From positions 62,806,001 to 62,870,000 of the forward strand of contig OZ241830.1 of NCBI GenBank assembly GCA_965202585.1: a DNA stretch of 64,000 nucleotides, in the 5' to 3' direction. The position numbers and the translations under genes were made by a program. Below are positions 8,101 through 64,000 of the stretch, one piece after another; the stretch's first letter is position 1, and each line of letters begins with the position of its first letter. The notes under the pieces were generated by a model that was not told the origin of the DNA, searched no databases, and worked only from the letters and a program-made list of their open reading frames with translations. The DNA is from Thalia democratica (taxonomy: Eukaryota).

Positions 8101-10127
8101 CAAACTTTATCGAAAAACCTTGAATAACTTTTATTAATTAGGATTCGAGAGTTTTTTAAGTTTCTAAAAAATGATTTGAAAACAAAGCAAATTACTAGTA
8201 TTTGAAAATCTTTATTAGTATAAAAATTTGCTTTAGTAATTAAAGCTTAGAAAAATTAAACTAGTTTCAAAAATGTTTTTGCTAAATAAAATAAATAGAA
8301 AAAAGATACATTAATAAGTTAGAAATTATAAAAGTCCTCAGTTAAAACAATAAAACAAACAGATCTTTTAACTTATGGACAACTTATTATGGACAAAAAG
8401 ATATATATTTTTTTAGACAAATTATCAAAGTTATAATTTTATTGTCCCAAAAAATTTATGTGTGCATTAATGTAATGATTTTAGACAATATATGACATAC
8501 TACATGGTATATTTTTAGTTTATATATTTAAACATTTTATTTTGAAAAATTTAAGTATGTGCTTTTATTTTATAAACTATAACTGTTTTTTTTAGAAAGT
8601 TGTTTCGTTAATCACTGAAGCTTAAACTTAAGCTCTAAAAGCTCTGAAGTACAAAGGAACTTTGAATTGTAAGTTAACAACATTTTTTTTATGATCAAAA
8701 AGATCTTTAAAAAGTAACAAGTAAAAAAAAACTTAAAAAATTAACTTATTGCTGATTTTTTTTTTAATTTATTAAATAAACATTAACAAAACAAAGTCTA
8801 CTGTTTGTGTGTTTAAAACTATTGCATTAATTAACTGTTATGCCGTAACCTTATTTTTTTAACGTTATCTATTAAACATAGCAAACAGTCAAAAAGTTTA
8901 CCGTTTTATATTGCTTCTCAGAAAAAACAATACAGTATTTCCTTATAAAAACTATTTTTAATAATAAACTAGATTTCGTTTTTGTTGAAAAACTTCAATT
9001 GAAAAAACTGCTAATACAGTCTTTGTTTATATATATTATACTTGAGTTGTAAAATCAACTTACAGTTTCATTTGTTTAAAATAATTGTTCAATGTTATAA
9101 GTATACTTATTACGGAACTGACAGTGTGGAGAGGTGGTATAGTTTTAAAAGTAACAAAATTAATTAAGTTTAAGCGATTTCGGAAATTATTAAGAAAGTA
9201 TCCAAGTATTGTCAAATAAAATGTAAAAGTATATGAAGCTCTTTTTTTTGACGTTTTATGTATATAAGCTGGTTAAGTTTAAATTGTGGTTTTTGTATTA
9301 TTTAAAAATTAGCCATAAATGTTTTAATACAAACTTTTAAAACAAGATTTTATAGTCCAGTAACATTGTTTTCCTAAGTGTAAAGTTTTTGATTAGTATG
9401 AAAGCTTTAGAGAAAAACATAACCTGAAGTTAGTTAGTACATCGGTAAATTGAAACTAACTCTTATGTAATCATGTAAATAAAAGTTAGATACTAAATAC
9501 AGTTACAAATCTTTAAAACGTTTATTTTCAACTTTTGTGTTTAAAGTTTATAACCTATAACTTTATTGAGATTTAGGACAACTTTTACGTTACTAACTTT
9601 AATTAAATTAATAACGATTACAAAACAAAAAAATAAAAGTTCAGCTAAATACTGTATTTTAAAACGTTTAAAAAGGTAACAAAAAATTTGTATATTTAGA
9701 ACCGTTCAAAGTGTTTTAAAATTAAACAATTAATTAAAAGTTTAGCTATTCAAACATGTTTTACGCATAGTTATAAAAAAACATAAAAAACTAAAATAAT
9801 GAGTAATCTTTGTTAATGCAATATTGAAATAAACTTTTATATGCTGCTAAAAATCGTCAAGAGTTGAAATTTATATATTTTGAAAAGCTTATGTAAAATA
9901 TAAACAGCTGCAGTCAAAGAAAGTGGAAATAAGCTTGTTATAATGTATTGATTTTTTTTACTTGTCATGTTCAATTTATGCTACTACGGCAAAATAGTTT
10001 TTAATACAAAAAAAAAAAATCAAAAGCAAAACTTGGTATTAAACAAAACTGTTATCAAACAAACTTGAATATTGTAGATCAACAAAAAGCTGTTAAAAGA
10101 TTGCAAGTTAACTTAGTTACAGTTATT

Positions 10128-12681
10128 TTATATTTTTTCTTCTGTCGTTGAACTTTCTCCTTCACATTTCTCGAACAACGAGTCGAAATACTGTTCCTGA
10201 ATTCTCATACTATGAATATGCTCCAACTGTTTTCTTCGTTTTCTTAATTTAATAAGTTTATTTTTTCCTATGTTATCATATATATTAGGTAAAATTCGAT
10301 ATAAAAAGCAATTCCATTAGTTTATTAATAGCTTCCAAATGTAATTTATATGTGAAAAAAAGGAACGTTTTAAAACCATTATAGTTTTGTTTTCAGCTTC
10401 TTTGCTATAAGTGCTAAGTGTGCTAACGTGCAGAACTTAAAATATCAACAAACAAACTTCAGGTCAGTGGCAAGCATAGAAGTTTCGTATCTGGGGGTTT
10501 TCCCACAATCGTGCAACGCGCAAGTTTCAGGGAGGGGACAGTTGTCTGGCAGGCTGCTGTACCTCTTGTTGAGTTTGGGAGGTCGCCTCCTGGGTTCCTC
10601 GGCAACCGTGGCTGTGAATAGGGTTTGTGAAAATATAATGATACAGTTGCACCACCGCTGAACTATTAATGTAATTAAAGTTGTTTGTGTATTTGAATAT
10701 TTTTTTAATGTCGAAATAGGTGTGTATTTACAAAACAATTTTATGTTTTTTTGTATTAAAAAGCGTGATTAAACCACAAAATATTTATTTTCGTCATATT
10801 ATTTTTTTTTTAGCTACTATGAATAATTAAAAACTAACTAAATCATACAAGCAGTTGTGTATTTTTTACACCAAATACTAAAACTCTAAGATTACACAAA
10901 TAAAACTACTTATGCACTTACAAAAAAATATCATGAAAATATATAAACTTGCTTAATCCTGAAAGTGTTTGTTGAATTTATAAAAGTTATTTTAGTAATA
11001 TCGTTTTCTTATTATAACTAGATTAAAGCTGCATATTAAAAAAGTTCAGTATAGTTAACGCTTAAAAAAATTGCTTTTGTTTAGTGGTTTGTTAACACCA
11101 CACAAAATAATTTTGTAAACACCATTTTAAATTGTATTAGTAAAATTTTTCTTAATAGGTTTAACGTTTTAAAAAAACATTGTACAAAGTTTTTGTAAAG
11201 GTTAAAAGCTTTAAACAGAAAATATCAATCTTACATCAAGAAACAATCTTTGAAAAGTTATTAAAGAATTTTATATTGACTAGATACAACTCATTGTTTA
11301 TTAATGTTGATAAAACCAATTAAAGTCAACGCGTTCTAAAACGTAGCTAGATGCCAGCAACAATTTTACAGATAAAAACATATATAAATATTTAATAATT
11401 TGTTTTTAAGTTTAACTTTTACCTTTAATTGAAGCTTGTTAAAGACTTGAACACTTTCCAGCTTACAAAATTCAAAATATTAATGAATTTAGAATGTTCC
11501 AGACAAAAAAAAACTTTGGAAAATTGTTAATTTTAAACAAAACTGTTATAAACCATAGAAACATAAAAAAAAAATCCTAGCAATGGTTTTTGATAACATA
11601 TCCATAACGTTTTGTATATTTTAGCCTAAATTAGGTTGAAGTTAGACCAATACACAGTAATATTGCAAAACAAAACTAAAAAAGTATTTTAAACTATTAT
11701 TGCTTTAGTTAACTAAAAGGTTTAGGTACCTTATTTCAAAGGCTTCTTAGGTACCTTGCCAAAAGTTTTACTAATTAAAAGAAATTAACTAACAAGCCTT
11801 TAAATTTGTTTTTTTATTCCGATGAGTTTTCAAACAACTTAAATCATAATGTACTTTCCTTACGTTAAAACACATTTAAAACTTGGGTTAATGCCATAAG
11901 ATGTTTTATCGAACTAAAAATAAAATTATGACATCGCATGTTTATGGTTTGAACTTAACTTTAAAGATAAAAAACTCCAGTTTTTAAATTACAACGCATT
12001 ACTTCATTAAAAAAGCCAATAAAACTACAAATAAAATTCAATTTCTATAATTTTTAGGAATACATAATGAGTTACAAATAATAAAATACATCCAATTTTT
12101 TTGCATATGTGTAATCTAGTTTTACAAAATAAAACTTTTTTTCTGAGTAAGATTTATTTAAAGTAATTAAAAGTTGGTCAGCTTTTGCCTTCACACTGCT
12201 GGCGAGCAAACATAACTGGCTCATCTATGAATTATTTATTTCTGATAGGGTTTAAAAATCCATTACGACAACTTTTTAGCTTTGTTCACTCCAACGGGGC
12301 ATGTATTATTTTTTGCGTTTAAAGTTTTTTGACAAAATAAATACAATTTCAATCATTGTGTGTAACAACTGATTTTTTTTTTACCGAACTCAATTTTGAA
12401 ATTTAATGAAAATATTTTATTTCATATATACGTAAAAAAATATTTTAAAGCAAACTAATTTTATTAACACTTATTAACTGTCAAGTTTTTTTTTCCGAAA
12501 TTCTATGTTCACATATTTTTTACATACTTTCTAGTAGCACTAGTAACAACAAAATTACCTAGAGGAGAATCTGACATGAGGGACATGTGGAAAGGGGAGG
12601 CACCTTTTCTGAAATCGGATTCAGATTGGGATCCGGATTCGATCCAGCAACTCAGGGACGTCACCTCTCCGTCGTCTTCTT
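10128..12681 (-). CDS. 3' part of an unidentified gene (at least 3 exons; low-complexity Ser/Pro/Glu/Arg-rich protein)
   Basis: GC-elevated exons 12681-12559 (EEDDGEVTSLSCWIESGSQSESDFRKG...SDSPL), 10611-10458 (ATVAEEPRRRPPKLNKRYSSLPDNCPLPETCALHDCGK...) and 10242-10128 (KRRKQLEHIHSMRIQEQYFDSLFEKCEGESSTTEEKI-stop) join in phase with canonical splice sites. A possible upstream exon lies at about 13283-13241 (FYLHGIGSRITKAS). Start not found; no family recognised. Confidence 0.7.
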
Positions 12682-15600
12682 CTGTTTACGGATGAAAAAA
12701 ATAAGTGTTAATTTTATTTTTAATTTTAAAACAAATCATTATATTAAAACTTGAATTTTTTAGTTAACTTAAAGTCCAATAATTAGTTTATTGTTAAATT
12801 AAAAATAAATCAACTTGAATTTCACTGAAAAAAACGATCTGTTTGATTACTTTTAGATTTTTTTAGCATGACGTTTTTAAACCTAGAAATAAAATTTGAT
12901 CAAAACCAAACTAACCGATGTAATTATTTTCTATGGTTTGTGTGTCTTGGTAAAATGTAGTTAAAAATTGTTTTGATTCAGTGCTTAAGTGCAGTTTCTG
13001 CGTGTTGTCAATGCTAAAAAAACAACAGATAATATTTTAGTTTTATTCAAATAAAAAATGCCATTAACAAGAATTTAAAAGTTAAAAAGATGAATACTTT
13101 TACGTCAGTGTAATAGTAAAATTGTTTGGTTTTAATAAGTATAAACAGTATAGTAAGACTTTTTCTAACTTGAAGGTTTTTGTTAATATTTTTACAGTAT
13201 AGTAGTAGGAAAAACTTTTAGCTTTAATGAAAAAAAACCTGACGCTTTTGTTATTCTTGAACCAATTCCGTGCAGGTAGAACTGAAAAAATAGTCTAGTG
13301 GTTAATCATACAATCTTAACGTTAATATTTCTAATTATGATTACTAAAAATTGAAAAGAGGTTTTTTTAAGTTATAACATAAAAATTAAAGTGAAATAAA
13401 ACAAAGATTAGCTCATTAGAGACTCAAGAGTATAAACGTCGGTTTAATGTTTTAAGTTATTGTCAAGGGACCAATACTTTCAAAGTGTGTCAACTTAAAT
13501 CTACTTTACTAAAAATCCTCTTACTACCTTTACTACCTCTTAGTTGTTAATTCTATAACGTTATGTTCTACATTTAAAAGTTTGACATCTTTAAAAAAGA
13601 ACTCTCTAGTTGAACTTATGAACACAAATGTTAAATATTTTAGATGTTAACATTTTGTCAAATGTTAGACTTAAATCGCAATACGAATGTGTAATACGCA
13701 ATACCATCTAACATCGAATCAGATATAAAACAAACCGATTATATGCGTATTGGACCAACAATACGCAAATTAGAACATTTATACACATTTTGTCATATTT
13801 GTGCTATTTTTAGGTGAAGTTCATCTACTGTCAATCAAACTCATGCAGAAATGACAAACAAGCAGAACCTTTCTTTATTAATTAAGTCGGCTGCAAGTTT
13901 CACCGCGACTTAAAAGCTTGCTAATCAATTAAACAAATTAAAATACCAACTTTGCAAAACACGCTGGTTCAGCGATTTAAATCTTTGTAATATTTAGAAA
14001 TATCGCAGGTATTGTGATCATAAATTTTGTTTATTAATTTACATTTTTTTGATCGTATAACTGTTCTATCGCCTTTTAAAGTTTACTACTAAGTTATACT
14101 ACATGCAACCTTATATTTAAATAGCAGTAAATATTTTAAACTGTTTTGTTTTTACAGTTTAATTTTAATCTAAAACGTAAGTGTAGAAAATTATCTAAAA
14201 ATTACTGGTTTGCTTACAGATACAACACAAAAATATACTTTCTTTATTTTTAGGTGTACAAACTACAATAACTTTTGCTATAGTTGTGTGGCGCATATGT
14301 TTTTTTTACTTATTTACTTTTAATACAAGTGACTTTTTGTAAGCTTTAAACTTTTGGTGACTTACTTTATAAAAGAAAACCATATATATTATAATATTTT
14401 GGTCCTTAGCACTAATTAAATTTAGTTAAACTAGAAATTATCTAATATGTAAAAAACTAACTTAGTATGACTTACGAAAACAGTTCAAATGAAAAAACAG
14501 TTTTAAATTATGCTTTAAATACTAAGTAGATAATTTCTAAAAACAAAAATAAAACCTTTCGTCATAGTTCAAGTCGAGTTTTATTTGTGCGAGACAGCTG
14601 TTTTTCCCTGTTTTATTTAAACTTTTGACACCATGCGTTGCTAGGTTAAATTGTAATCTTATTTTTACGTGCCTCTAAAGTAAACCTACAAGTAAAGATT
14701 TGAAGCGCATGATAAAGTTTAAAACTACATAGACAAGTTTACCTTTTTTAAACAAAGTAGTAATTAGTTTTATTTTCTAAACAGTTTATGCGAACTATTA
14801 GTTTTAAAATATTTAATAAAACAATGATTGAAAAGTGCAAACATCAAACTAATAATACTTACAAAGCATCTTTTTTGTCAAAAATTAAAAAAAAAAAGTT
14901 AAACAGATAGAAATCAAGCATTCTTTTACGAATAAATCAATTTTTTGTATTTTTAATTTAATGAAATAAGAGCCATAACTATCAACATAATCAAATAGAC
15001 TTGGCTATAACAACGTTTTCTTTATTACTAACAAATCAAAACTTATTTCAAACTAGTTTGTATCACAAAGAAAGTTTGTACAAATTTATGCCTAATGCAA
15101 TTTAGTGCTCTGCTTTCTCTGCCGCTAGTGAAATTACATGGAAAAAAGGAAAGACGTAACTTTTATTTTTTCTTTCTCTTATGTGTAGTCAACTATTTTT
15201 CTTTGTTAAAATGCGCAGTTTTAAAACTAAAGTTTTGAATAGTTTAAACAAAGTATATGTAAAGCTCATGAATAAAATTTTAAACACGTTATACTTAGTA
15301 CTGTTTATAATTTTATGTTTTCTTCGACGTTCGAGGTACTTATACAATTTGTTGATGAGATTATTTAGATTCTACTGAAAAAATGAAGGAGTTTAAAAAA
15401 ATCAAAGCAACATTTATTTTGAAAAGATGTACAAGTCTTTGTATTCTCATACTATTATAGTTATCTTTATTATATAAAAAATTAGTTATTAAAAACACAA
15501 ATATGACTTAATACTTTATAAAACATATTAAAAGGAATAGAAAACTTAGAGTTTAGTTCAGATTTTGTGAAAACGTTTCAATTTTGTGCACCATTAGCAA

Positions 15601-17335
15601 CTTATAAGAAAAATTAACGTAAAAAAAAACACTAACAATGCATGTTTTACCTTCAAGTTTGTAACAAACTAAAAAATAACTTTAGGTAAATTTTAAATAC
15701 AAGCAAACTTGTTTCGCAAATTTAAAGTCATTCGAATATTTTTTTCTAATGGTTTCAGTTTAAGCTTGGAGTTATTTTGTAGAAGTTTTGTAATTATACC
15801 AAGTTTTAGTTAAAGTTTTATGCATTTTATGTTTATTCTAGTTACGGTGTACGAATGATAGGTAGGATAGCTTCAGGTTCTTCGGAGTGCATCTGACTTT
15901 TTTAACTATATTCTAAATTGAACCATCAACTTGTTAAAATAACGAAATTCAAGGTTAAAAATAATAAAAAAGGTTTAGGAAATAGAATCCTATTTTATTT
16001 CTCACTAAAGATTTTGCTTAAATAGTTTTAAAATTATCTTTGTTACTTATTAAATACTTCAAAAAAATAAATGCATTGTTAATTTGATAAGAAAAGTGTA
16101 GAAACAAATATAACTTTGTTATTTGCAAAAAGATTTAAAAAAATATTTTACAGCAGTAAAACATTAAACTTTAATAAAAAGTTAAACAAATTTATTATCT
16201 GCAATGTTAGAAAGGTTAAGTAGAAACTGTACTTTTGAAACTTTGATGTTTCGGACAACAAAACTTCTACTTTTCTTTACAACATTGTGAGAAATTTTTT
16301 GTAACTTATCTGCTTTTGTTTTTAAAAGTTTTCTTTTTATTTATTTTTTTTTCTTATTTTATTTTTAAAATAATCTAAGTGTGAAGTTTTATTTTTTCGC
16401 TAAAAACTAACAGAATATAACATAGTTTCATACTATAAGTAGCATTTACAATAATAATCGATATTTTCCGAAAACTATACAACTAAATTTTTAACCGCTT
16501 TTTTTAAGAACATTTTTTTAACTGTTTGTCTTACTTATAACGAATATTAGATAATAAATATCAAAACAACAGTATCTTATATCTAAGATAAAAAATAGTT
16601 AAAAGTTGTTAGAAATAAAGAAAACTTTAAGTATTAAAAATGATAAAACTATCAAGTTACTAAAATTATTTGTGAGTAACTTTAGTTTATCATTAATTTT
16701 AAGGGAACAAATAAAAATATTTTAATTAAAAAAATCTAAACACATTAAATAATCAAACTTTAATGTTTAATATATTTGAATAAAGCTTTAGAAAACTACT
16801 GTTTCGTATGGTTGTCTGTTTTTAATCAAATAAATAGCATAAAAATGAAAAAGTGTCTAAAGAAAAATTTTATAGAACCAAAAAAGGAATGTTAAAAACT
16901 AAAGCTTTCTTATCTTTGAAAAAAAACCTATTTAATAGTTAGAAACTAATATTTGCACACAGTTTTTTCTTTGTCTTTTTTCATTAAAAAAAAAAAAGAA
17001 ATAACAAACTACCAGTAAAAAAAACTTATTTTTAATGAGTTAATTCTATTTAGCAACTTACTTAAAATATACTCCTAAACTGCTTAGTAATCTATTCAGT
17101 AAAGACTAAAATTCTGTTAAAAGAAATATCAGTAATTAAAATAGAATATAATGAAAACACAAAAGCAGCTAGTTTTCATCTGAAAATATAAAGATAAAAC
17201 AAGGAGACTGAGTTATAAACTGTTAATACAATTTTGAAATAAAAGTTCTGTTGCTAACATAAAATTTTGATAAAAATTATAAAAGTAGATGTCAAGTAAA
17301 ATCGTCCAATGATATTTCAAAGCGTATTATGTCCG

Positions 17336-20300
17336 TCACCAGACTCCCACAGTTTTTTCAGGATACATCGGGTCTCCTTTCTTGCACTCCCACGCCTTAC
17401 CAAACTCATCAAAGTTTTTCAACGTCATCATTACGCTTAGAAAAAAATTAATAAGAACTAAAGTTGATAAAGTTTTTAATGTGTTTGTAGCATTAAATTA
17501 GATTTATCTGAAAAGTTTTTTCAATACATTTTTATAAAAGCTACGATTTTATTTATTTAAACAATTAAGGGCTCGCGTTAGAAAAAAATATTAATAGAAA
17601 TCTACATAACACATCAGTGCTAACTAAATTGAGTCGATTTTATTAAAAATACTAATTTTAATTTACCGCAGTCTTGGAGGCATATGTACATCTGACATTA
17701 ATTCTTCTAAATCATTCGGGTCTGATCCTTCTTTGGTGCACCAATCCTGAAAAAAAAGACTTTTTCTGCTTTTATAGTGTTTTTCAAAAGAAAAAACATG
17801 AATAAACTTAATTTCACTAATTGGCTGCACAACAATTAAAGTTTTTTAAACCTTGCGAATATTTTAAACAACACAAATCTAGGTTTTGTAAAATAAATTT
17901 TGATACTTAATATTAACATTGTCTATTCACATTATGATCTTTTTCATGATAAACTTAAAAAGTAAAAAAAATATTTAACCTACATTTGTATTTATTGTAA
18001 CTAACCTTACAACTATTTTTAGAACAAGTTTGAAATTTAACAGTATCGTAATCATACCTGAGCGAAGCTCAAAAAGAACATTTTTTCCTCGCTCCATTTG
18101 TTTAAGCCATCTATACGTTTTGATCGTCTCATTTTCATTGAATTTTGCCATTTCTTAAGTCCCTAAATATTAGTTTTTAAATGTTTTTATTTTTTTTATT
18201 AAAAAGGCATTTTTTGTTGTATAGCCCTTTTTTATAAAAAAGAACATTTAAAATAAATTAATTTTTAGTTAGTCGGTAACATAAGATTTTCTAATAAAAT
18301 AAAGAAAATCAGTGATCATAATATGATTGAAGTATTTAATTTTAAATTTACTATTTTTAATGCAAAGTAAAAATGTTTATAAAATATTTATATACTATTT
18401 TTTAAATTTTACATTACCCATCAGCTACTATTTTAATTTTAGTAAGGTTTAACAAATTTATGATTTTATTAAAAATAGAAGAATTTGTATCGTACTAGCT
18501 AAACAAAAAAATTAAGATGGCTAAAATATTTTGTTTTTAGAAAACTTATAGGATACTATGCTTTTTATATGTTCACTTTGTAGAATAATATCACTCAAAA
18601 TAATTCGTTTGTTAAACTAGTATACTAGACTATGTGCTAAGTATAAGCAAATAGTAGATACTAATGTAAGATGTACTTTTATTTTGATAGTTTTTAATTT
18701 TTTTTTATACTTTTTTTAAACTGTAGTAGTAAATAAATGTAATGTATGTATTACTAATTATAAACTATTGTACGGAAGCAAATAAAACAGGCGAGTCATT
18801 AACTTTAACTAACAGCGAACACTATTTTAAAAATGGTATGCCATGTCTTAAAGTAAAGTTTTGGTTTTACTTGGAAACTTATCAACTTACTTTGTATGCA
18901 AATTTCAAACCTCCAAGATCTGCAATGTTTTCGCCTAAGGTAGCTTTTCCATCTATCTAAACATAAAAAAGAAAACCTTTATTTACATAGTTTTCAGGAT
19001 ACTCAAGCAATTGATAAAATCATTTACAAATTGGAAGAAAAGTGTATAAAAGTTTAAAATTAGAAAGCGTTTTTATTCTATGCTTACAAGATAAAATTTT
19101 GCTTTGAACTGTTAATGTAGGGATTGATAAACTACGGATGTAACTTAGTTTTATTTTTTATCATAGTAAATATTTTATATTAGGCATTAAGTAACATACC
19201 GCTTGGCTCTGAATATGATTTTACTATTTTTTGATAAATTAAATAGTGTAACAGGTTTTAAATAAAAATGATTCGATGCCTCTTTGATAACTCTTTAAGT
19301 CATAAAAACTAGTTTTAAAAAACATTAAAACTAAGTATATTTCATAATAACATAAGTCTTGACTTTTATAAGACATAAGAAGCATATGAACACAATTTTT
19401 AATTGAATACAAATTAAAATAAAGTTTTCTAACATTTCGACCATGGTAGACCAGTTTCGAATATTCTTTTATCATTTCATCAGACTTTTTCTTAAAATGC
19501 TCTGCAGAGTGCTCACTCCACCAGTTTATTTTGTTACCAATTTTGTCGTATTTGCCACCCAGGTTATCAACACTGTGGGTAATCTTTGCGAAATTGATTC
19601 AATATTAGCGGTAGTTTAACGTCACTTGTTTGAGTTTGATATTATGGTAAAAATGAGTGTTAAACTATGCGCTTTACAAACAAAACTGATTTAAAAAAAA
19701 TTCTTACCCTGTTAGCTTTAGCTTGAAGTTATTTTTCTTAGCAACAAAATAAACCAGAAACAATTTTTAAAAACTCACTTCATGTCCGACAACGAACCCA
19801 ATAGCGCCGTAGTTCATAAACTCAGCTCTTTTACCCGAAAACCAAGGGAGATGGAAATGGCCAAGTTGCACAGACAAACCGTTTTTGATCGGTACATAAA
19901 ACGCAACTGCCTTAGTCATTTGGAAGGTGCTGTAAAAAGTATTCATTAATTTTTGTTTGCAAAAGTAAGCGTTTTTAATTAGTCGATTGTACAGAGAGTT
20001 TATTGGGTATTTATTCACCGATTTCACCATGTTCATCGCTATTTTTTTTAAGTTTTCTCTCAACCTAAACTGCATGAATATTTTCAAGCGTTTAGTTGCC
20101 CGCACAGCTGCTTCAAAACAAAACTCACGACAATCTGTCGACCGGCTTGTAAATTTTCTCAACATCCCTCCTTCTCTCGTTCATGGCCAGGCCTTCCACG
20201 TTTCTGATGAAAGCCTCCATCCTCTGGTCTTCGTCGTCATAGCTACCGGGGTCGATGCTAACCTCCTCGAAGTACCGGTCAATTTCCGTCATGTTCTGAT

Positions 20301-49100: not shown

Positions 49101-49629
49101 TAAATTTAACACTGAAATTAACAAACAAGTTAGTTTTTGTTAGACCTTTTTATTTTAAATGTACTATTGTTTGTTTTGATGTTCACATTTATTAAGAAAA
49201 TCTTTATTAGTAGACAATTTTTATTATTTTCAGTTTAATAGATAACTTTAGACTTAAATCATTTATATCGCTTATAATTAATATGTAAAGACAAGTTTTA
49301 AATTAGATTAACAACACAAAAACCATTAATTTAAACTTTGAGTCTAGAACAAAACTTCTATTGTTTTCAATGTTTATAGTTACAAATATTCTTATTTTCT
49401 AGGAAAGTATTTTTAAAGTGCATAAAAAGTATATAATGAAAGTTATTAGTTTAACTCTATGTTGTTTTATAAAAAGCTTAACATAAAACTAGCAATAAAA
49501 AAACTTTGTGAGAGGTAATAAAATAATTTTAAAATAAATCTTATGTTTAGTAAGAATAATAATTTGTTCAATATCATACAGAAAATACTTGATATTCTTG
49601 CGGAATGCGTTAAATCGCGAAGAAGCTAA
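40105..49629 (+). pseudogene. Cytosolic phospholipase A2 (group IV, PLA2G4-like; C2 plus lysophospholipase catalytic domain), copy 1, 19 exons, with one in-frame TAA at 44060-44062 (null allele, young pseudogene or base error)
   Basis: Exons 40105-40138, 40454-40476, 40966-41044, 42054-42208 (DTPDPYV), 42420-42533 (ILDSDWFVDDEIG), 42634-42671, 42964-43236 (GSGGGYR...GLSGSTW), 43520-43651, 43999-44092 (GQPVSYTDIFA*MLGE), 44341-44455, 44646-44782 (DWFEFTPYEVG), 45593 to about 45716/45739 (VWGSA; donor uncertain), 45937-46000, 46606-46732, 47480-47579, 48031-48218 (YLCDAALAFNSPYP..LRPER), 48516-48699 (LLAEKWA), 48980-49128, 49582-49629 (TAA). Motif order matches human cPLA2-alpha. Confidence 0.9.
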
Positions 49630-53304: not shown

Positions 53305-56025
53305 ATGAGACTGTTTACATTATCAAGGAGGTGCATAGTAATGTTTTTAATCATATTTATGTCTTTTACATGGATGGTTGAAAGCACTGAGCTTCAGCTT
53401 TTGGAAACCAAAGAACCTGCACCTTACCAAGTAATTTTGTTGGCCAACGACAAAATAAACGAGCAAGGAAAGCTTGTATGGGACTTTGCGGCAACAGGAG
53501 TTATTTTAAACGAGCAATGGGTTTTGACTACTATGGGCTTTAATAGATTAAGAGACTATTATGCAAAAAATTTAACTAAAACCACAGTCATTGCCGGTGA
53601 TACAAATTTTTTAGAAAACGTAGAAGATACTTCGAGCAGATACAGGCAGACGTTATTGGCTTGCGATATTAAAGTAGTTAAGAAATTCATGTTGCTTAAA
53701 GTCAACGGCAAGTTTCATATAGACGGTAAAAACATCCAGAGAGTCCAGTTGCCAAAGACCTACGTGAGTGGAGCACATACTTTGGAGAACGGTTTTCCGT
53801 CGAAATCTGACAAGTGCCAGGTGTGGGGATGGAAGAAAGGTTCAATGGAACCAATCGGAGAAGTCCAGAATGTCGGTAAAGTTAAGATAACTGAACTTGA
53901 ATTTATGAACTCGAACCAGTATATAGGAGTTAAACGTTCGTTAACTACCATGAGAAAAATTATGAAGTCATTCCAAAACAACCGATGCCATGCTGGAGAA
54001 TGCACCGAGATGAAAATTGTTGGTATGCCCCTAATGTGCAGGCGCCAAGATGACAAGCCTTGGATACTAATGGGTGTAGGAGACTGGGATCCGAACTGGC
54101 AGTGGACGGACGTAAACCATGCCTTTGTCAGGGTTTCCACCTATATTTACGAGTTGCGACAACAGATGCAGGCATCAACTCCGGATCTCTATTTGTACCA
54201 AGGAGTTGAAGGGCAGCCGTCGAAGTTTGCCTTCCAAGCAATAGTGAAGGTGACGCACCAAGGAAGCGAGCAAAAGTATGTGCACCAGTGCCAGGGAGCG
54301 ATCGTTTCCCACAACAAAGTGCTGACGGCGGCGAGCTGCTTCGACAACAACCTTCAGGGCCAAAGTGTGACTCAGGTCACGGTCGTAGTGGGAGTGACGG
54401 ACTTAAGAATTGGGGGGACCGAAATAATCGCTCGCAGTTGGTGGCAGTATGACGAAACAGATTTGGAGGGTGGATCAAGGCCACAACAGCAGGAAAAATA
54501 CGACCAGTATGACGACTTTGATTTTTACAACATCGGCATCATCGAGTTGAGTAAAGATCTCACCTTTGACGACAACGTCAAAACAGTCAACTTGGCCAGG
54601 ACAACCGAAGGTTTGGAGGGATGCACCGTATCGAGTTGGGAAAAAAAAGGTCTTAGCTACTACCCCATGATCAGGTACGATATATTATTTTTGTATAACT
54701 AGTAAATTGGTAAATTTTTAGGAGAATTTTCAAGTTGTTTAAACTCTTTTTCCATGCTTAAAGATTAAATAAAAGAAGTTTAATGTATTTTTGTTAACAT
54801 TGCACTTGTTTTTAAGAAGTCAAATTGATAAACTAAAGTTTATAAATGATCTACTAGACCAGTTTTTTTATTATTTGATACATTTTTTTCTACTTCTTTA
54901 ATAAAATACAATAGTTTTCAAAAAAAAAAAAACTTTAGATATTTTATCTAACATATTCTAACTGCAAAACAACTTTTGCCCTGTAGGGATCTTCAGTTTA
55001 AGATTGATTTAATCTGTCAATCTAAATTAAGCAAATAGTTGGAACATAATATAAAACTAAAAAAAAGTTAAAAGTAGTTTTATTTTACTGTTTGTAATTA
55101 ATAAAAATTTATTTAAATTTTGTGTTTTATACTTTTTTAAAGTACTTAATAATGCGACAACAATAACTGCAATTTAGTTTAATTTAAGTTTAAACTATAT
55201 TCAACACTTAATAAAAATTTTAATACTTCATAAAAACGAACTTAAATAAATTTTGGTTTGTTTTAATGTGTAAAGTTAAGAACTTTTAGCCTCTTGTTTT
55301 GTTTTTGGTATTAAATATTTTCCACCTACAGGGCGAAAAAGGTGTTTTGTAACTAAAGTCTGACAAATATAATCTTGGTAACTCTTTTATCTAAGAGTAA
55401 GAGTTTGTTCTGTTATAAGTGGACTTTCACTTAAACTAGAGTATTATTGTGTTTATAGTTGTTTTTAGTTGATTGTTAGTTAATTCAAATGCGACTTTGT
55501 TTTAATACAGCTGTTTTTCACCACGATATTGAACACTCGTAAGGCAAAAATTACTTTTGTTTAGTTTGTATGACTTAATAACATATGTTATAGTTATAAA
55601 AATAGTTAGCATTAAAAATCCTTCTAATTGGCACACTTAAGTTAACTTAACTATTTTGTAGATCTATAACTTGTTTACCGTTTAAAAGTCACATAACCGA
55701 CAAACCTTTTTTCAGGTACCGACACGTGTCGGTGTTGGAGTCGAAGAGGTGCAACTCGCCCATGCTGAAGCCGAACGTGCTGGAGAAGTTCTTCGACGAG
55801 CACCTGTGTGTGAAGGAACGGGAGGAAGGCCAGTACCCCAGCATAGAGGAGGGAGCGCCCATGACCTGTTACGTCAACGGTAGAGTTTACTTGGTGGGAA
55901 TTGCCAGTTTCGCGGCGAACTTCGGCGAACTTTCGCTGGAACGGTTCGGAGGCGAGCAGGGACCGAAAATATTCACCAGCATCCCCGCGCACGTTCGGTG
56001 GATCGACGCAAAGGTGCAGGCGTAA
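53305..56025 (+). CDS. Secreted tandem serine-protease homologue: two trypsin-fold domains, both lacking the catalytic triad (~559 aa, 2 exons)
   Basis: Exon 1 53305-54674 (hydrophobic N-terminus; domain 1 GVILNEQWVLTTMGF...CQVWGW...GMPLMC...WILMGVG; domain 2 CQGAIVSHNKVLTAASC...YNIGIIEL...CTVSSW). Phase-2 intron 54675-55715. Exon 2 55716-56025 (HLCVK...SIEEGAPMTC...YLVGIASF...IFTSIPAHVRWI, TAA). Confidence 0.9.
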
Positions 56026-56365: not shown

Positions 56366-56531
56366 TTTTACTAAAACAATGTTTCACTCGCTTGAATAAA
56401 ATGAAACGATATCGTCAGTTGAATAAAAACTTATTCAAATAGTATAAAATTCTACTTGAATAATGTTTCATTCAACTGATGATCTCGTTTGATTTGGTTC
56501 AAGCGATTGAAACATTGTTTTGTTAGTAAAA
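56366..56531. mobile_element. Fold-back/MITE-like element with ~60-bp imperfect terminal inverted arms; a second partial copy lies at 31584-31659
   Basis: Left arm ttttactaaaacaatgtttcactcgcttgaataaaatgaaacgatatcgtcagttgaat matches the reverse complement of 56470-56531 (6 mismatches and a 3-nt indel by hand). 31584-31659 matches the left arm plus part of the spacer (cttattcaaatag). Confidence 0.7.
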
Positions 56532-57120
56532 CTTAAAATGTTGAACTGATCATTCTCTTCATAATTAAGTGGAGGACTTTTATTGTTATGTATAAAGTAA
56601 AAAGTACACAGTATTCTATATTTAGACTAGAATCAAGTAGATGAATGAATAAATTACAAGACTAGCGTTTACACTGACACCTAAACAAAGTACTTTACAA
56701 ATGAATGCAGCATTTTAAAAATTCCAATAATCAAAACTTCGTTATATATTACAAAGTAATATAACTCTTATAGGCAAGTCGCGGAGTTGCTTGAAACTAA
56801 AATTTTTAACTCTGAAGAATAAACTCGTTAGAAAAACACCAATACTACTTGATACTAATAAGTCTTAAACTATATAGATATATACTAGAAAATTAAAATA
56901 GAAGTTTACGAATACTTTGTTTGAACCAACTGTTGCTAACTTTATCGTTATTTAAAAATCAGTTGTTATTCAATTTTTACCGCTTGTAAGTTCATATAAC
57001 CCGAATAACTCCTACATAACTGAAATATTTTTTGGCTTCTTAATCTTAAAGTTAACTTTGGAATTTTTGACATTTTTCAACTTTACTGCACAGTTTAGAA
57101 GGTTCACTAGACCCTTAAAC

Positions 57121-57180: not shown

Positions 57181-58054
57181 CTTTTTAGTTTTAGAAATCT
57201 TTTTAGTTAATAGTTATGACGTCACTTTTTTTTACAGACCCTCAAAATAATCTGAAGTAAATGTATTTGGTAAATCATCTCTTACCTAAAGTGTTGTACA
57301 ATTAAACTTTATTCAAATTCATGAAGTCAAACGCTTCTAATCAAATAGCTATTGAGACAAGTACTTTTATAATAATCTACAATTTTTATATAAAGTTTAA
57401 TAAATAAATACAAAACTATAGGTTTTAAAACTTTTATTAAAAAAGCTTAAAGTTAGTTTATAGACTTTTGTGCCGTATTGCCTAAATCGTTCTTTCTACT
57501 TAAATAACTTTCAATATTAGTATATTAATTGATATAACAAATTTGTACATTGTTATATATCAAATTTTTTGTTAGTTGTTTGAAAAATTATAACTAAATA
57601 AAATAGTCTCCCGCGTAGTATTTTGTACTCAGGTCGAAAATACGTGATAGTACGGAAAGTGCGTAGTTATAGACAGCTTCGAACTTTAGCTTAAAAATTA
57701 AGACTTTCTGGCTTAGTTGTCAATTAATGTAAACTTGATAAATAAAAACTAAAACTTTATTAGTTAAGGATTTGCATTGGTAAAAATTTATTATTTCAGA
57801 TAGTAACAAAAAAAGTTTTTAAATAGCTTTTATTAAACAAACGAATCAACACGATAAGTACTAATCAAAAAATATCATTTTGGTAGACATCAACAAAAAA
57901 GTACAGTCAGAAAAACAAAAAAAATCTGAATAATTCTGAAATGCATTTAAAAATTAGTATTAAGATAGTGCTTTGTAAGAAAACTAAAGATTACAAGTAT
58001 TATTATCTAGCAATTTGTATAAGGTTTGATCATACCAAATCGGTCATCAAACCA

Positions 58055-58110
58055 CAAGCCTTCGGTAGACTGGGACCGGTTTCGTCTTTATTAGGACTCA
58101 TCAGTCAGCC
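58055..58110 (-). ncRNA. Minimal type I hammerhead ribozyme motif (Penelope/retrozyme type)
   Basis: Minus strand reads GGCUGA-CUGAUGA-GUC cuaauaaa GAC-GAAA-C CG G-UC-CCAGUC. Full catalytic core; 3-bp stem II; palindromic ACCGGU stem III; GUC cleavage triplet; stem I GGCUG/CAGUC with an A-C mismatch next to the core. Confidence 0.8.
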
Positions 58111-58201
58111 ACAACCGAAAAACATCATCAACCAAAGTCAACAATCTACAAACAGTTTCTACATACAAGAACATAATAAAAACGTTTGCTAGTATTGATC
58201 A

Positions 58202-58289
58202 CTGCCTGATGAGTCCTATTACGGACGAATCTGACCTCAGTCTATCGAAGGCTTGTAGTCTGATGGTCGAAATGGTATGAACAAACTTT
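58202..58289 (+). ncRNA. Second, degenerate hammerhead copy in inverted orientation
   Basis: CTGATGA-GTCC tattac GGAC-GAAT-CTGACC-TCAGTC: perfect stem II, but GAAA changed to GAAT and the GUC triplet lost. Gapless 70/88 identity (hand count) to the reverse complement of 58021-58108. Confidence 0.7.
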
Positions 58290-58443
58290 ATCTTAAGTCG
58301 AGCGTTTCTCACGGCATACGAAGTCCAGGTTAGGTTTTGTTGACTTTCGTCTATGTTTTCGTTAATAATTTAAAGACATAAAATTATTAGAAATAAAAAG
58401 TTTAATTTTTTTGCATTTAGCTTTAAATGGTGTTCTTTAAAAT

Positions 58444-61400
58444 TTATCTTCTTTTTGAATCCACGCATTCCGCAACAATATGAAGTATTTTCTGCGTGAA
58501 GTTTAATAAATTAATACTTTTGCAAAAACATGAAATATTGGTTTTATTTATCGCATTTAAATAGTTTCTTTTGTTAGTTTTAAGTAAAATATATATAATA
58601 AAACAATATAAAGTTAAACTGTTAATCTTTTTATTTTTTCTTTGAAATAATCCTTAAAACTTAAGTACAATAAAAATTACTTGAACTAGTCAAAAAGCGT
58701 TACTACAAATGAGTACAAAAGCGAATAAAAAAACAAACTTGTTTGTTAATTTCAGTGTTAAACTTGACGAGGTCATGCAATCTTTCGAACTCTTCTTTCT
58801 CGTAGTGCAAGTCAAACGTGCTGTTGTATGGAGTATCTTTTGCAAATATATCAAAATCTCCTTCCATGTCTTCTGGATCCCTCATAATTCCTAAAAATTT
58901 AAACACATTAGTCACGAACTTGAAAAGTAGTGACATTTATTTGTTGTTCAAACATTTATAAAGCTATATAAAGCATATGAAATATGTTATAGAATAAACT
59001 TTATAACAGTAATACAATTACTTATACAAATATAAACTGCTAGATATGACATATAATAGGGGTGGGCAACGTACGGCCCGCGAGCAAAGTGACAGGCCCG
59101 CACAGGGTCAATATTACAAACTTTTCATAAAACTTTTTATAATACTTTTACAAAACAAAACTGTAAGAATTCGTCTTTAAAAAAATGCTAAAAAATTACT
59201 TTATGAACTAATGTGTGCTAATAAATACACTATTTTGTCATAATATTTTCCGTTGTTCTAACTTATTTGGAATATCTTTTTGCCAAATTACCCCATGCAA
59301 AGTGTTTCTTTAAGTACGATATTTGTCAATATCAATTTGTAGGCATTATTTAAACATCTGACTTGTCTCAATCCTCATCTTAAGTTGTCAGACTTGAGAA
59401 AGTTTTGTGAATTTGAAGAATTCAAAAAAGGATCAACTGTATTCATAAAATTAGAATCCGGCCTGATCCAAAACTTTTTTCAAAATTAATATCCGACCGG
59501 ATCCGCATCTCGACTTAAAATTATTAGTCAGATTCGGACCTAACAATTTATATTTCGGCTGGATCCAGCCACTGGTTTATCATGTTTATTATTTATATGA
59601 AAGTTATACTTTAGTTTATTTTATTTCATCGTTACAAAAAACTACAGCATTGACCAAGATACTAATAAACATAAATTGCAGACTGTTTAATTTTGAAATA
59701 CATAAAAATAAATTGTATTAATTACTCAAAAAAAGTATCTGCAATCTACATAGATATTTATTTCGAAATTGAACTTCAAGTAAAAGTCACAGCAGCAGTG
59801 TTACTATTTTTTAAGGATACAATACTGTTAGATAGAACACATAAAAATTTAACTAGAGCATTTTGTATAGTATGTTATAAAAACTTATAACAATAACGAA
59901 CTCTGTAAGTTACTTATATTGCATACACCAGGGATCGACAAACATTTTGTGGTCGTGGACCAAGCTTTAAAAAAATACATGTGGGCCGCAGTTGTAGTTT
60001 GCACCGTTAATGATAGACCACAAAATATCTAATGTAAGTTTCTAATCTAAAGTGATTATAACTAAGACCTTTTTTACTATAAGTTTGAAACCCAAAAAAA
60101 CTAGTGTAACTTTTATTTTCTGGGCCATATATGCATGATCGTCGGTCGTATTTCATTTATTTTAAACTATTGCTTACAGGCCACACTTTTACCCTTCGCG
60201 GCCGCAGTTTGTTTAGCCCTGGCATATACAATGCTTGTATAAAATAAACTTTAAACTTTGTTCAATGTACCTGGTTTACTGAACTTTCTGAACATGACAT
60301 TGCACAAGCAAAAATGAATAACAATAGGGCATTTAGGGTCAGTGTCTTTGAACACATACATTTCTTTTAGTCCTTCTCTGTCGTATACAGAAGCATCAAT
60401 TCGAGGGAACGGTATGTCATTCAACTGTGCCCACTTTTCCGCAAGTAGTAGGTTCTAAATTTGTTACTTAAAACCTTTATCAGCAAACAACTTATCTAAG
60501 TAGCTATAAGAAAAAACTTAGTAATCAAAAAATACTAAATAAATTTTATAGGTTTTAGTCAATTTTATTTGAAGTGTTAGTAGAAATTAGTAAATGAAGG
60601 TTTTATGGAGAAAAAACTATATTGTAAAGTTTAAGTTATAAAATTCTATCTATAAACAAAGGTTTCACAGAACTTTACCTTTATTCTAAGAATAAAACAA
60701 GTTTTTACATAAATAATTCGTATCAAAAATTAAAGTGAAGTAAATTTGTCATAGCAACTTCAAAAGCTTAAAATATATCTTTAATTTATTCAAAACATTT
60801 TACTTACCCTAAATGGCATCATGTCGTCTTTTTCTCTCTTGCTAAAGTCGTAGGATATTATTACGTCACATTTTCGTTCCGGTCTAAGTATAGTTGGGTA
60901 AGGAGAATTGATTGAAAGTGCAGCATCACCTATATAAATTTCAGCTTTCTCACTTAAATCTTTTTCGTTGAACTTTTCTTTTTCAACTCCTACGTCTGCT
61001 TTAATATTATTTGTTGATATATGAAACTTGATTTAAACATCTTTTTATTATGATTGTTTTAAGTATCATCGAAAAAATAATAATTTTAGAGAAACATTAA
61101 CACTACTTATTGAACAATAAAAAAAGCGCTCAGAAATTTGGTCTTAGGACAAAAAACCTTTTCGGCTATCAACGATGCACAACGAAAATCGAAATAAAAC
61201 ATATAACAAAGTTCATGGCTTAAATAAAAAATAAATTGAAAGAATTTGCTTTCAATTTCAAAAAAAAAGTTACATTTTTGATTAAAAAACAAGTATTTAG
61301 TTTACATCGATACTAAAATTTAAAACGTTGCAGTATTCTAATGTGAGCAAGTACTTATTTAATATATTTCTTTAATAAATAAACTTAATATGTTTAAATT

Positions 61401-64000
61401 TAGTAACTTAAGCTATTTTTCGAACTTTCACAAGCATTAGGTTTGCTGTATGAAGTCTGTCTGATTGTCAATTACATTAAAATATAAAACAAACTACAGA
61501 TCTAAATTCCATTACTCTATTAACTTGAGCTATTAAAAAAAACAATACTATTGAAAAACAGTGTAACTCAATTGAACAACCCCCAATAGTAATCAAATTT
61601 ATTTTGTAAATTGTTAACCTTCAAGATTCATACTTTTGTCAAATGAATTTTCGGTTTTCCGGCATAAAAAATTCAGACCTCTGAAAAAATTAAAAACTAG
61701 TCCTCCTCTTTTCTGACTTCTTGACTGGAAATAAATTGTTTTCAGATGTTTTTTAGTTCCCATATATTGTTTTAAGATCTTTATTTTACTAAAACTTGAA
61801 ACGTAGATATTTTGTAAATTTAAAACATTACTCAAACTTACTTAAATTTCTACTTATTTCAGTAAAAAAATTGCTTGTTTTAGTGATGTACTAACAGAAT
61901 CTTAATTATACAGCAGATTGCTTACATAAAAGGCATAGTAACAATGTTTTAAAAATAAAAACACAAAAACTAAAATAAAAACAACACTTTTTGTATGTAT
62001 CTTATATTAAAAATCTTAAAACAAATTTACAGAAGTTCTCAATGACTACTAAGATAGTTTTTCACGGTTTTCTAAAATTTAATTACGTTTATATGGCAAA
62101 ATGTACTGTGTTGTATACACAATAAACAAAAATACAAATAAATTGGCTAAACCAGTAAAAAGTTTAATTACATTTGATAAAAGAAGTATAATTTGCTTTT
62201 AACTAGTTTTATATACCCTATAATTTTAAACTTGGGGATATTTTTGGTCTAATTTATTTTTAATAACTAAACCCAAGGTTTTAACAGTCGTATTGAAATT
62301 AGTCTTACAAATGAAAATAACTTTAACTTATTTTTATCTTTTTTATAAATTTATAGAATATGTTTTAAATCAAAAGCTAAGCAATTGTTGCAATATTTGC
62401 AAAGCATTTGTTGCAAACCTTCAAAAAACTTTATTTTGAAAATAATATTTTTGAAACTTACTTTGAAAAAATCAATCTTCATCAGAAAATTTATAATTCC
62501 GTCTGTTAAACTCATATTCTTATTTTCATTCCCATTTTCAACTGTCAGGTTTTTTTCGTTTTCTGTTTTTTCAAGCTCGGGCTCAACAGCTTGGTTCATG
62601 TAATCCAAAAATGACTCTCTAAAAGTATAAACAAGTTTATTTGAATTATATCTCGTAAAAAGTCATTTTCATCAAGCAAAACTATGCATTGAGAGAATTT
62701 AACTGTCCTTATTGTATTTTTACAAAGTTTGATGTTAGTTTACTTTTTATTATTTTTGTTAATTTTATTATAGACGAAAAGTTATACAAATATGTGATGA
62801 TATTTATCAACCAAAAAACATTGAACTATTTAAAAATTAAAAAAAATTTGTTGGTAATAAAACATTTTTTTTTAATTTACTTAATGTTCTCACATAACAA
62901 AAACTAAAATAACTACATATATATGTAATAAACACGATTAGTACTTTAGATGTATTGTTACAAAAACAAAAATGTCGTGTAGATGATTGTAAATAAACCG
63001 TTTAAGTTTAAGTTTAATGAAATCGTTATATCTTAAGCTTTTTATTAAAAACATTAAAAAGTTAGCGTATAACTTAATAGTTGAAATTAACTACAAAATA
63101 ACTTTAGTTCTAGTTCATTCTGGTCTCCTACCACATCCTTAACTGAGCTGTTTCGGTTATCGCTACCTGTGTAAATTTATTATGTGTAGAACTTTAATAA
63201 AGTTGCAATTATTCAAAAAATATAAATTTTGTTTTAGAGCATACGAAGTTTGATAGTATAAAGTTCTGTTTTGCTGTAACCACAACTTAAATGAATATAA
63301 TTATATTAACGACAGAAATTTGAAGCATAAAGCGTGACAAAAATTAAAAAAAAACATCAATCATGAATTTAGCTTTATTGAGTTTATACAACCTTTTTTC
63401 ATGCTTTCTTTTATCTCGTCAGTTCTTTGATTTTTATCTTCTGAATTTTTGATATCGTTATTTTCATACCGGCAATATGTAGACAGTTGCCTGGACAGAT
63501 TAACTGCGTAAGCGCTACCCCACACAGCCTAAAATTGTTTCAACTCTAAATTAACTGTTAAAGTGCTAAAAATTTGTTTCAATTTATTTTTTTTATTACA
63601 AAACTAAATAAAAAAAAAGTTGTCTATACATTATAAAAAAGAGTATGTAATACATCTACTACCTATTGTGTTAGAACGCGTCATGACATAAACAATAGTA
63701 TTTTTTTCTCTACATACAATACCATATTTAACTTTTATTTTAAATTCGTGCCAAGTATTGCTCTAACTTATTTTTTCAATGCATAAACTAACTTTTAAGT
63801 CGTTTAAATTTTGTAAGATAAGAAATATATGGTACTACTTTCAGTTAAAATGCATTTATTTGACATCGTTATGGTTGAAATGCTACAACAAACCATGAGG
63901 TATTGTAATGGTGCTTCTTCATACTTCTTCATAATATTTCCTAGAAAAAATTTGCTGTTAAAATCGTTGATGCGAGCAAACGTTTGGTGTTTTGATATTC
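58444..64000 (-). CDS. Cytosolic phospholipase A2 (PLA2G4-like) copy 2, 3' half; gene continues beyond the window
   Basis: Exons >64000-63894, 63528-63393 (AVWGSAYA), 63166-63103, 62618-62462, 61724-61619 (GGLVFNFFRGL), a probable micro-exon near 61460-61430, 61026-60808 (YIGDAALSINSPYPTILRPER), 60454-60271 (LLLAEKWA), 58890-58739, 58491-58444 (TAA). All visible exons are open and orthologous to copy 1 exons. Confidence 0.92.
59066..59110 (+). mobile_element. Isolated hAT-like left end
   Basis: taggggtgggcaacgtacggcccgcg...ggcccgca resembles Charlie-type termini; no matching right end found. Confidence 0.5.
59929..60221 (+). mobile_element. ~293-bp hAT-type MITE in a cPLA2-2 intron
   Basis: TIRs cagggatcgacaaac and (reverse complement) cagggctaaacaaac; 8-bp target-site duplication gcatacac / gcatatac (7/8); internal gggccgca motifs. 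Confidence 0.8.

Follow-up and report, generated by a model that had tools for sequence, protein, structure and literature searches.

The cPLA2-2 gene and its 3' untranslated region

The window (the whole stretch of 64 kb of Thalia democratica DNA analysed here) carries on its minus strand a phospholipase gene whose last exon holds a long hairpin with a hammerhead ribozyme motif. The structure of this gene was derived from read data in the form of Logan contigs, which show presence only and in which a minor cleaved fraction is invisible. Runs X1-X3 are DNA-like, with contigs that cross introns and a single-copy depth of ~60-80. In a further run (X4), a 3,139-nt contig (record 25) aligns in five pieces, the last of which covers 58491-57816 without a break, and once the boundaries are shifted by 1-4 nt all four gaps prove to be GT..AG introns. 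Since this contig is spliced, X4 can be regarded as cDNA-like. Its joined exons form an open frame of 240 codons up to the stop codon at 58446-58444, and the transcript-supported exons upstream of the last one span 58739..61767 on the minus strand:

61619-61767, minus strand: upstream exon of the cPLA2 gene (X4 contig)
60808-60995, minus strand: upstream exon of the cPLA2 gene (X4 contig)
~60271-60454, minus strand: upstream exon of the cPLA2 gene (X4 contig)
58739-~58890, minus strand: upstream exon of the cPLA2 gene (X4 contig)
57816..58491, minus strand: last exon of the cPLA2 gene, holding the entire hairpin (X4 record 25)
58443->57816, minus strand: 3' UTR of the cPLA2 gene, 628 nt (X4 record 25, stop codon)
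57829..57834, minus strand: AATAAA poly(A) signal, 13 nt ahead of the contig end at 57816 (X4 contig, sequence)

The exon at ~60271-60454 passes the cutoff of the Pfam family PLA2_B (25.7 bits vs a cutoff of 23) and matches human cytosolic PLA2 (1CJY) with an E-value of 1.7e-19, which identifies the host gene as a cPLA2 (cPLA2-2 in the following). A second cPLA2 paralogue on the plus strand, ending at ~49629 (49579-49629), has a similar last exon (...KILDILAECVKSRRS in the plus-strand paralogue vs ...KILHIVAECVDSKRR), and no hammerhead was found downstream of it. Between the 3' ends of these two convergent genes lies a trypsin-fold gene at 53305-56025 on the plus strand (Pfam Trypsin, E 8e-14 on a 465-aa ORF).

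A hammerhead motif in one arm of an inverted repeat

On the minus strand, 58112..58068 reads GGCUGA-CUGAUGA-GUCC-UAAUAA-AGAC-GAA-ACCGGU-C|CCAGUC. The invariant core of a hammerhead is complete in this copy (58105-58074), comprising C3-A9, G12-A14, A15.1/U16.1 and a C as H17, with C17 at 58074. Helix I begins with an A2.1·C1.1 mismatch followed by five pairs (GGCUG/CAGUC), to which the alignment with the Rfam model HH9 adds an outer helix UUCGG/CCGAA; helix II consists of 3 bp (GUC/GAC) and a C10.4·A11.4 mismatch, and helix III is a single A-U pair closing a palindromic CCGG loop (ACCGGU). By definition, helix III of metazoan type I hammerheads is short (1-2 bp) and is capped by a small palindromic loop (PMC4209133). 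The minus-strand motif agrees with this type in its core (N7 any nucleotide, H17 not G) and in its helix III (A-[CCGG]-U); it lacks a helix I of ~6 bp opening with a paired 1.1-2.1, and the 4-bp helix II. A helix III of 1 bp with a palindromic loop makes the motif dimer-dependent.

Two matches to the pattern CTGATGAGTC..GACGAA were counted in the 64-kb window vs 0.00 expected from 100 shuffles, the second one lying on the plus strand at 58206-58229. The two motifs form the arms of a head-to-head inverted repeat (58019-58108 / 58202-58291), which are 90 nt long and 80% complementary:

58051..58126, minus strand: type I hammerhead motif, sense to the cPLA2 mRNA (sequence, full HH9 model, pattern count)
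58073..58074, minus strand: predicted scissile bond, after C17 (58074) and before C1.1 (58073) (motif sequence)
58019..58108, minus strand: arm A, the hammerhead plus a tail of ~55 nt (self-comparison; 90 nt, 80% identity to arm B)
58109..58201, no strand: 93-nt spacer between the arms (self-comparison, loose-end consensus)
58202..58291, plus strand: arm B, an inverted 5'-truncated copy (self-comparison, Hammerhead_1 match)

The first-pass annotation had described a near-intact hammerhead of type I layout on the minus strand, with a tiny palindromic stem III of the Penelope or retrozyme kind and an A2.1-C1.1 mismatch, just downstream of the cPLA2 stop codon on the same strand. Strand, layout and mismatch are as it stated, and the motif starts 332 nt after the stop. 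It had also supposed that the 3' UTR might reach this far, and the last exon in X4 (58491->57816) indeed spans the whole hairpin. Helix II, however, has only 3 bp, the motif does not stand by itself, being one arm of the 90-nt inverted repeat, and the cleavage point that it placed at ~58071 has to be moved to 58074|58073. In the search with Rfam hammerhead models that it proposed, Hammerhead_HH9 in sensitive mode aligns over its full length to 58051-58123 (-) with 27.0 bits (E 2.4e-4), which is below the gathering score of this family (52 bits), and at the gathering threshold zero families were found in the whole 64-kb window.

As a reference for this score, metagenome contigs were scanned for the core combined with an ACCGGTC helix III, which yielded 79 loci (L001-L079). 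None of them is similar to the window copy beyond the ~33-nt core, so that they serve only as a reference for the ribozyme class; as copies of the window's family they were rejected, being unrelated elements of Penelope/Athena type, and behind many of them there are telomere-like CCCTCA repeats, a feature of Athena-type Penelope-like elements. Intact tandem ACCGGU-class hammerheads among these loci likewise remain below gathering (24.8-30.8 bits), and the 27-bit score is therefore a property of the class and has no bearing on decay. The Rfam gathering score discriminates poorly for ACCGGU-class hammerheads, and the Rfam type I and HH9 models at gathering under-report intact Penelope-type members, as seen across many of the 79 loci. 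The same reference set puts the two mismatches into perspective. Its 38 distinct motifs contain 28 helix I variants; 2.1-1.1 is paired in 33 of them, as U-A, A-U, G-C or C-G (covariation), and C10.4-G11.4 is present in 36. Since the window copy fails at 2.1-1.1 and at 10.4-11.4, both of its lesions affect positions that are kept paired in the class.

The sub-gathering score could be taken to suggest that the motif resembles the hammerhead consensus by chance, as might happen in AT-rich DNA. The probability of this is practically nil, considering that two matches were observed where none was expected, that the full HH9 model is covered including the outer helix I, and that there is a homologous inverted copy as well as thousands of similar genomic pieces (see below); the pattern count, the repeat depth and the inverted copy refute it. 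A similarity at 19414-19483 (34 nt, 85%; CTGATGA..CGAAA), by comparison, was dismissed as a chance resemblance, lacking both helices and a GUC context.

The hammerhead of arm B (58200-58252, +) is core-broken, with 15.1 changed from A to U and 16.1 from U to C, and obtained 16 bits with the Rfam model Hammerhead_1 in sensitive mode (E 1.4). Past 58123 the consensus of the loose contig ends resembles the spacer of the window, which assigns the spacer, at least from 58124 to 58165, to the 5' portion of the copy in minus orientation; the truncation at the 5' end consequently affects the plus copy. Penelope-type insertions typically have an inverted copy, shortened at its 5' end, next to their 5' end (PMC8557442). 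Each arm bears lesions of its own, and their comparison points to a putative canonical ancestor in which helix I (GxCUGA/UCAGUC) had 6 bp and helix II (GUCC/GGAC) had 4 bp. In a search for a target-site duplication no exact word of at least 7 nt was common to both flanks, and no recognisable tail was seen; erosion of a duplication is expected given that the arms have diverged by 20%. Direct tandem units are absent from the 64 kb, which hold one sense and one inverted motif, and no notable ORF was found in the element. We also considered a circularly permuted monomer of ~170 nt, but the underlying match between 58337-58362 and the spacer was equalled in 177 of 500 shuffles and the reciprocal flank match in 148 of 500, leaving it without statistical support.

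A head-to-head pair of hammerheads was also found in one of the reference loci (L056:1486-1743), where 91-nt arms with 98% complementarity flank a spacer of 76 nt. It is a young form of the same geometry. The contig concerned (34% GC, from an unrelated organism) contains a third, partial hammerhead motif at 1570-1599. The core of another locus (L016:193-224, on a contig of 27% GC) is identical to that of the inferred ancestor of the window copy (GUCC/GGAC, UAAUAA, ACCGGUC) and its flanks are unrelated; it may derive from a related AT-rich organism or represent a cleavage-site junction.

Folding of the hairpin and continuity of the mRNA contig

The 291-nt minus-strand RNA 58300-58010 folds into a single long hairpin of -128.3 kcal/mol (z = -12.4), and in the mRNA arm B is an antisense blocker of arm A. 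The hammerhead motif in isolation has a z-score of -0.74, and in its MFE structure, which is a misfold, bases of the core are paired to the region of helix III. Within the 628-nt UTR the pairing probability of the ribozyme stems falls to 4e-10 for helix II and 3e-16 for helix I, and enforcing these stems costs +25.7 kcal/mol. An RNA that ends directly after the hammerhead already folds into the full hairpin, since transcription passes the antisense arm before it reaches arm A. In the folding computation the active fold was not attainable in the mRNA context, MFE thermodynamics leaving aside helicases, proteins and co-transcriptional kinetics. Competing sequences upstream have been found to disrupt cleavage by a Schistosoma hammerhead in a 3' UTR, both in cells and in embryos (PMC7192461).

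The mRNA contig of X4 (record 25) crosses the predicted cleavage site uncut, with the putative site lying 257 nt ahead of the poly(A) site. This bears on the main proposal of the first-pass annotation, namely that self-cleavage would remove the poly(A) tail and bring the cPLA2-2 mRNA under ribozyme control. An active cis-acting hammerhead that down-regulates this mRNA in the manner of Clec2 could draw on the complete core and on the position of the motif, which is sense to the mature mRNA and lies within its 3' UTR, upstream of its poly(A) site, as well as on the precedent of 3'-UTR hammerheads that reduce expression (PMC2950038); those of Clec2 lower reporter expression by 80% according to the account given there (Martick et al., 2008, via PMC2950038). 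Such control would make cPLA2-2, a lipid-signalling enzyme, the second natural case of an mRNA governed by a 3'-UTR hammerhead after mammalian Clec2. We consider it very unlikely, given the uncut transcript contig, the masking by the hairpin with its penalty of +25.7 kcal/mol, a helix III that is monomer-incompetent (PMC4209133), the lack of a tandem partner, the two helix lesions, the absence of the element from the cPLA2 paralogue and the membership of the motif in a very abundant repeat family. As far as the same account describes them, the discontinuous Clec2 hammerheads of mammals resemble the motif in lying sense to a coding mRNA, in its 3' UTR and upstream of the poly(A) site, but they are single-copy, conserved across mammals and built on stable helices, whereas we find a masked, monomer-incompetent repeat copy in an mRNA that assembles uncut.

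The dependence on a partner has been described for hammerheads of this kind. Where helix III has 1-2 bp and a palindromic loop, cleavage as a monomer is hampered and a second copy becomes necessary; with a single minimal motif cleavage was undetectable, and dimers had low activity (PMC4209133). Monomers of axolotl retrozymes cleave at 6-22% per hour and dimers much more, and most or at least many hammerheads of invertebrate retrozymes are efficient cleavers (PMC7229834). In RNA-seq data on a Penelope element of a lizard, none of the reads terminated at its hammerhead (PMC11167929). The hammerheads of newt satellite 2 and Schistosoma Sm-alpha, as they are summarised in PMC4209133 (Forster et al., 1988), share with the motif the type I fold, helices I and II capable of loop-loop contacts and a dimer-dependent activity through a palindromic helix III; unlike there, where direct tandem partners are at hand, the neighbour at our locus lies on the opposite strand and is antisense.

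The hairpin itself, ~270 nt of imperfect dsRNA, might instead be the functional unit, a target of Dicer/Drosha-type processing, of ADAR editing or of dsRNA-binding proteins, with the ribozyme sequence being incidental. We regard this as unlikely, and equally so that the hairpin modulates the stability or localisation of the cPLA2-2 mRNA. Its great stability (-128 kcal/mol, z -12.4), its presence within the mature mRNA contig and its retention in two organisms would all be in line with such a role. However, the sequence variants of X4 (at 58167, 58205, 58287 and elsewhere) also occur in the DNA-like runs and are thus alleles and not the result of editing, and the mechanism of insertion alone accounts for a hairpin (PMC8557442). 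Nor does the top match of the Rfam sensitive mode, the plant miRNA precursor MIR841 (58032-58277, +; E 1.3e-10), lend weight to processing: with 55.8 bits vs a gathering score of 200 it was rejected, as it is driven by the generic shape of a long imperfect hairpin.

Abundance, transcription and origin of the repeat

Over 58076-58272 the summed contig depth reaches ~200,000 in runs X1-X3, as compared to ~60-80 for single-copy sequence and ~100 in neighbouring bins, with ~2,900 contigs aligned per run. The summed depth is not a copy number; it shows that there are thousands of pieces that are at least 90% alike. Single-copy contigs stop at the motif (at 58080/58094 and 58069/58122). These features are those of a multi-copy, dispersed, non-coding family as is characteristic of retrozymes, the membership of the window copy resting on depth and on the loose ends of contigs. 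In X4 the summed depth over the motif bin is ~178 vs 18 for the mRNA contig, which indicates that other members of the family are transcribed. Further short motif-bearing contigs are found in this run (records 26 and 27).

Transcripts of other family members could in principle serve as partners in trans. One might therefore imagine a conditional ribozyme that is off until the hairpin opens, or that dimerises in trans with family RNAs through the palindromic ACCGGU, resulting in regulated cleavage. Over the motif, other hammerhead-bearing family transcripts in X4 have ~10x the summed depth found for the mRNA contig, a palindromic helix III permits intermolecular pairing in principle (PMC4209133), and engineered competing strands have been used to tune 3'-UTR ribozymes (PMC7192461). 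Nevertheless, the masking is extreme, the lesions at 1.1 and 11.4 would persist in any such complex, and the head-to-head arrangement recurs as a by-product of insertion (L056), and we hold regulated cleavage of this sort to be hardly credible. The notion of a natural 'caged' ribozyme, silenced by its antisense arm until a helicase, editing or a dsRNA-binding protein opens the hairpin or until family RNAs dimerise in trans, is in our view highly improbable; if it were true, host mRNAs with solo copies of the repeat, such as that of cPLA2-2, would be under conditional ribozyme control.

The insertion is present in organisms A and B, with contigs breaking within the motif. In organism B (X2) some contigs enter arm A from the unique flank and extend to 58069, others lead from the spacer across arm B into the gene, and since both arms are in this way joined to their flanks the insertion is common to the two organisms. 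Its flanks have diverged by 2-4.5% between the organisms and its two arms from each other by 20%, a pattern that fits an old insertion.

We consider it probable that the locus represents a decayed head-to-head insertion of the Penelope or retrozyme type that resides passively in the 3' UTR of cPLA2-2, with its ribozyme masked and catalytically silent; both the lack of catalysis and the insertion mechanism behind the inversion are what we infer from the combined observations. According to this scenario, a hammerhead-bearing non-coding retroelement, of the 'non-LTR retrozyme' kind that is mobilised by Penelope elements, would have inserted head-to-head long ago, the motif being the better-preserved of its two arms, and would have landed in, or become part of, the 3' UTR of one of the two cPLA2 paralogues. 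During transcription the antisense arm would emerge first and arm A, as it emerges, would pair with it to an imperfect hairpin of ~90 bp, preventing the ribozyme fold. Even if unmasked, a 1-bp helix III with a CCGG loop would need a second sense copy, of which none is present, and the copy in the window would have lost the 1.1-2.1 pair and one pair of helix II. With the hammerhead masked, partnerless and lesioned, transcription of the mRNA would continue across the site, with polyadenylation 257 nt farther on, and any residual effect on the host mRNA would be exerted through the long dsRNA hairpin, not through self-cleavage. Counting against this reading are the core of arm A, which is wholly intact despite the 20% divergence of the arms, and the persistence of the insertion in two organisms. 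The intact core could hint at constraint, with the qualification that arm A is short and the sample tiny.

The decayed insertion can be compared with two kinds of mobile elements. Like animal non-LTR retrozymes (PMC7229834; bioRxiv 10.64898/2026.07.22.740005), it is an AT-rich non-coding repeat with a type I hammerhead and a palindromic helix III, and its family is transcribed. Copies in 3' UTRs are already known from Xenopus, where the few retrozymes that overlap with exons are mostly located in 3' UTRs (bioRxiv 10.64898/2026.07.22.740005, Li et al., 2026). Unlike those elements, which are direct tandem repeats of 150-450 bp that each bear a type I hammerhead, the window holds a sense copy and an inverted truncated one, and the insertion is old and mutated. 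With the hammerheads of Penelope pLTRs (PMC4209133, PMC8557442) it shares the core and the ACCGGUC helix III, which are identical to those of the 79 reference loci, and with Penelope-type insertions (PMC8557442) the head-to-head inverted 5'-truncated copy, seen at L056 too. It differs from Penelope-like elements in that it has neither an attached ORF for reverse transcriptase/GIY-YIG nor a recognisable 30-40-bp tail or target-site duplication. Because Penelope-type repeats insert head-to-head, a hammerhead that lands in a UTR brings its own antisense blocker along, and the hairpin in the cPLA2 3' UTR provides a concrete natural example for antisense masking of a ribozyme. For genome-wide ribozyme screens this calls for caution, as cleavage does not follow from the presence of a complete core in a UTR that is transcribed.

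Other repeats are found in and around the same gene. ARAGORN detected no tRNA-like head in a repeat at 59061-59651, which is located in a 1,380-nt intron of cPLA2 and reaches a summed depth of ~30,000-54,000 vs a background of ~100. This repeat is GC-rich at its start (GGGGTGGGCAACGTACGGCCCGC...) and includes several pieces resembling GGATCCGGCC, and contig joints and loose ends cluster at 59074-59083. Two further repeated segments, 61031-61227 and 56500-56696, have summed depths of ~13,000-20,000 and ~6,000-12,000; one of them lies in an upstream cPLA2 intron and the other ~1.1 kb past the poly(A) site.
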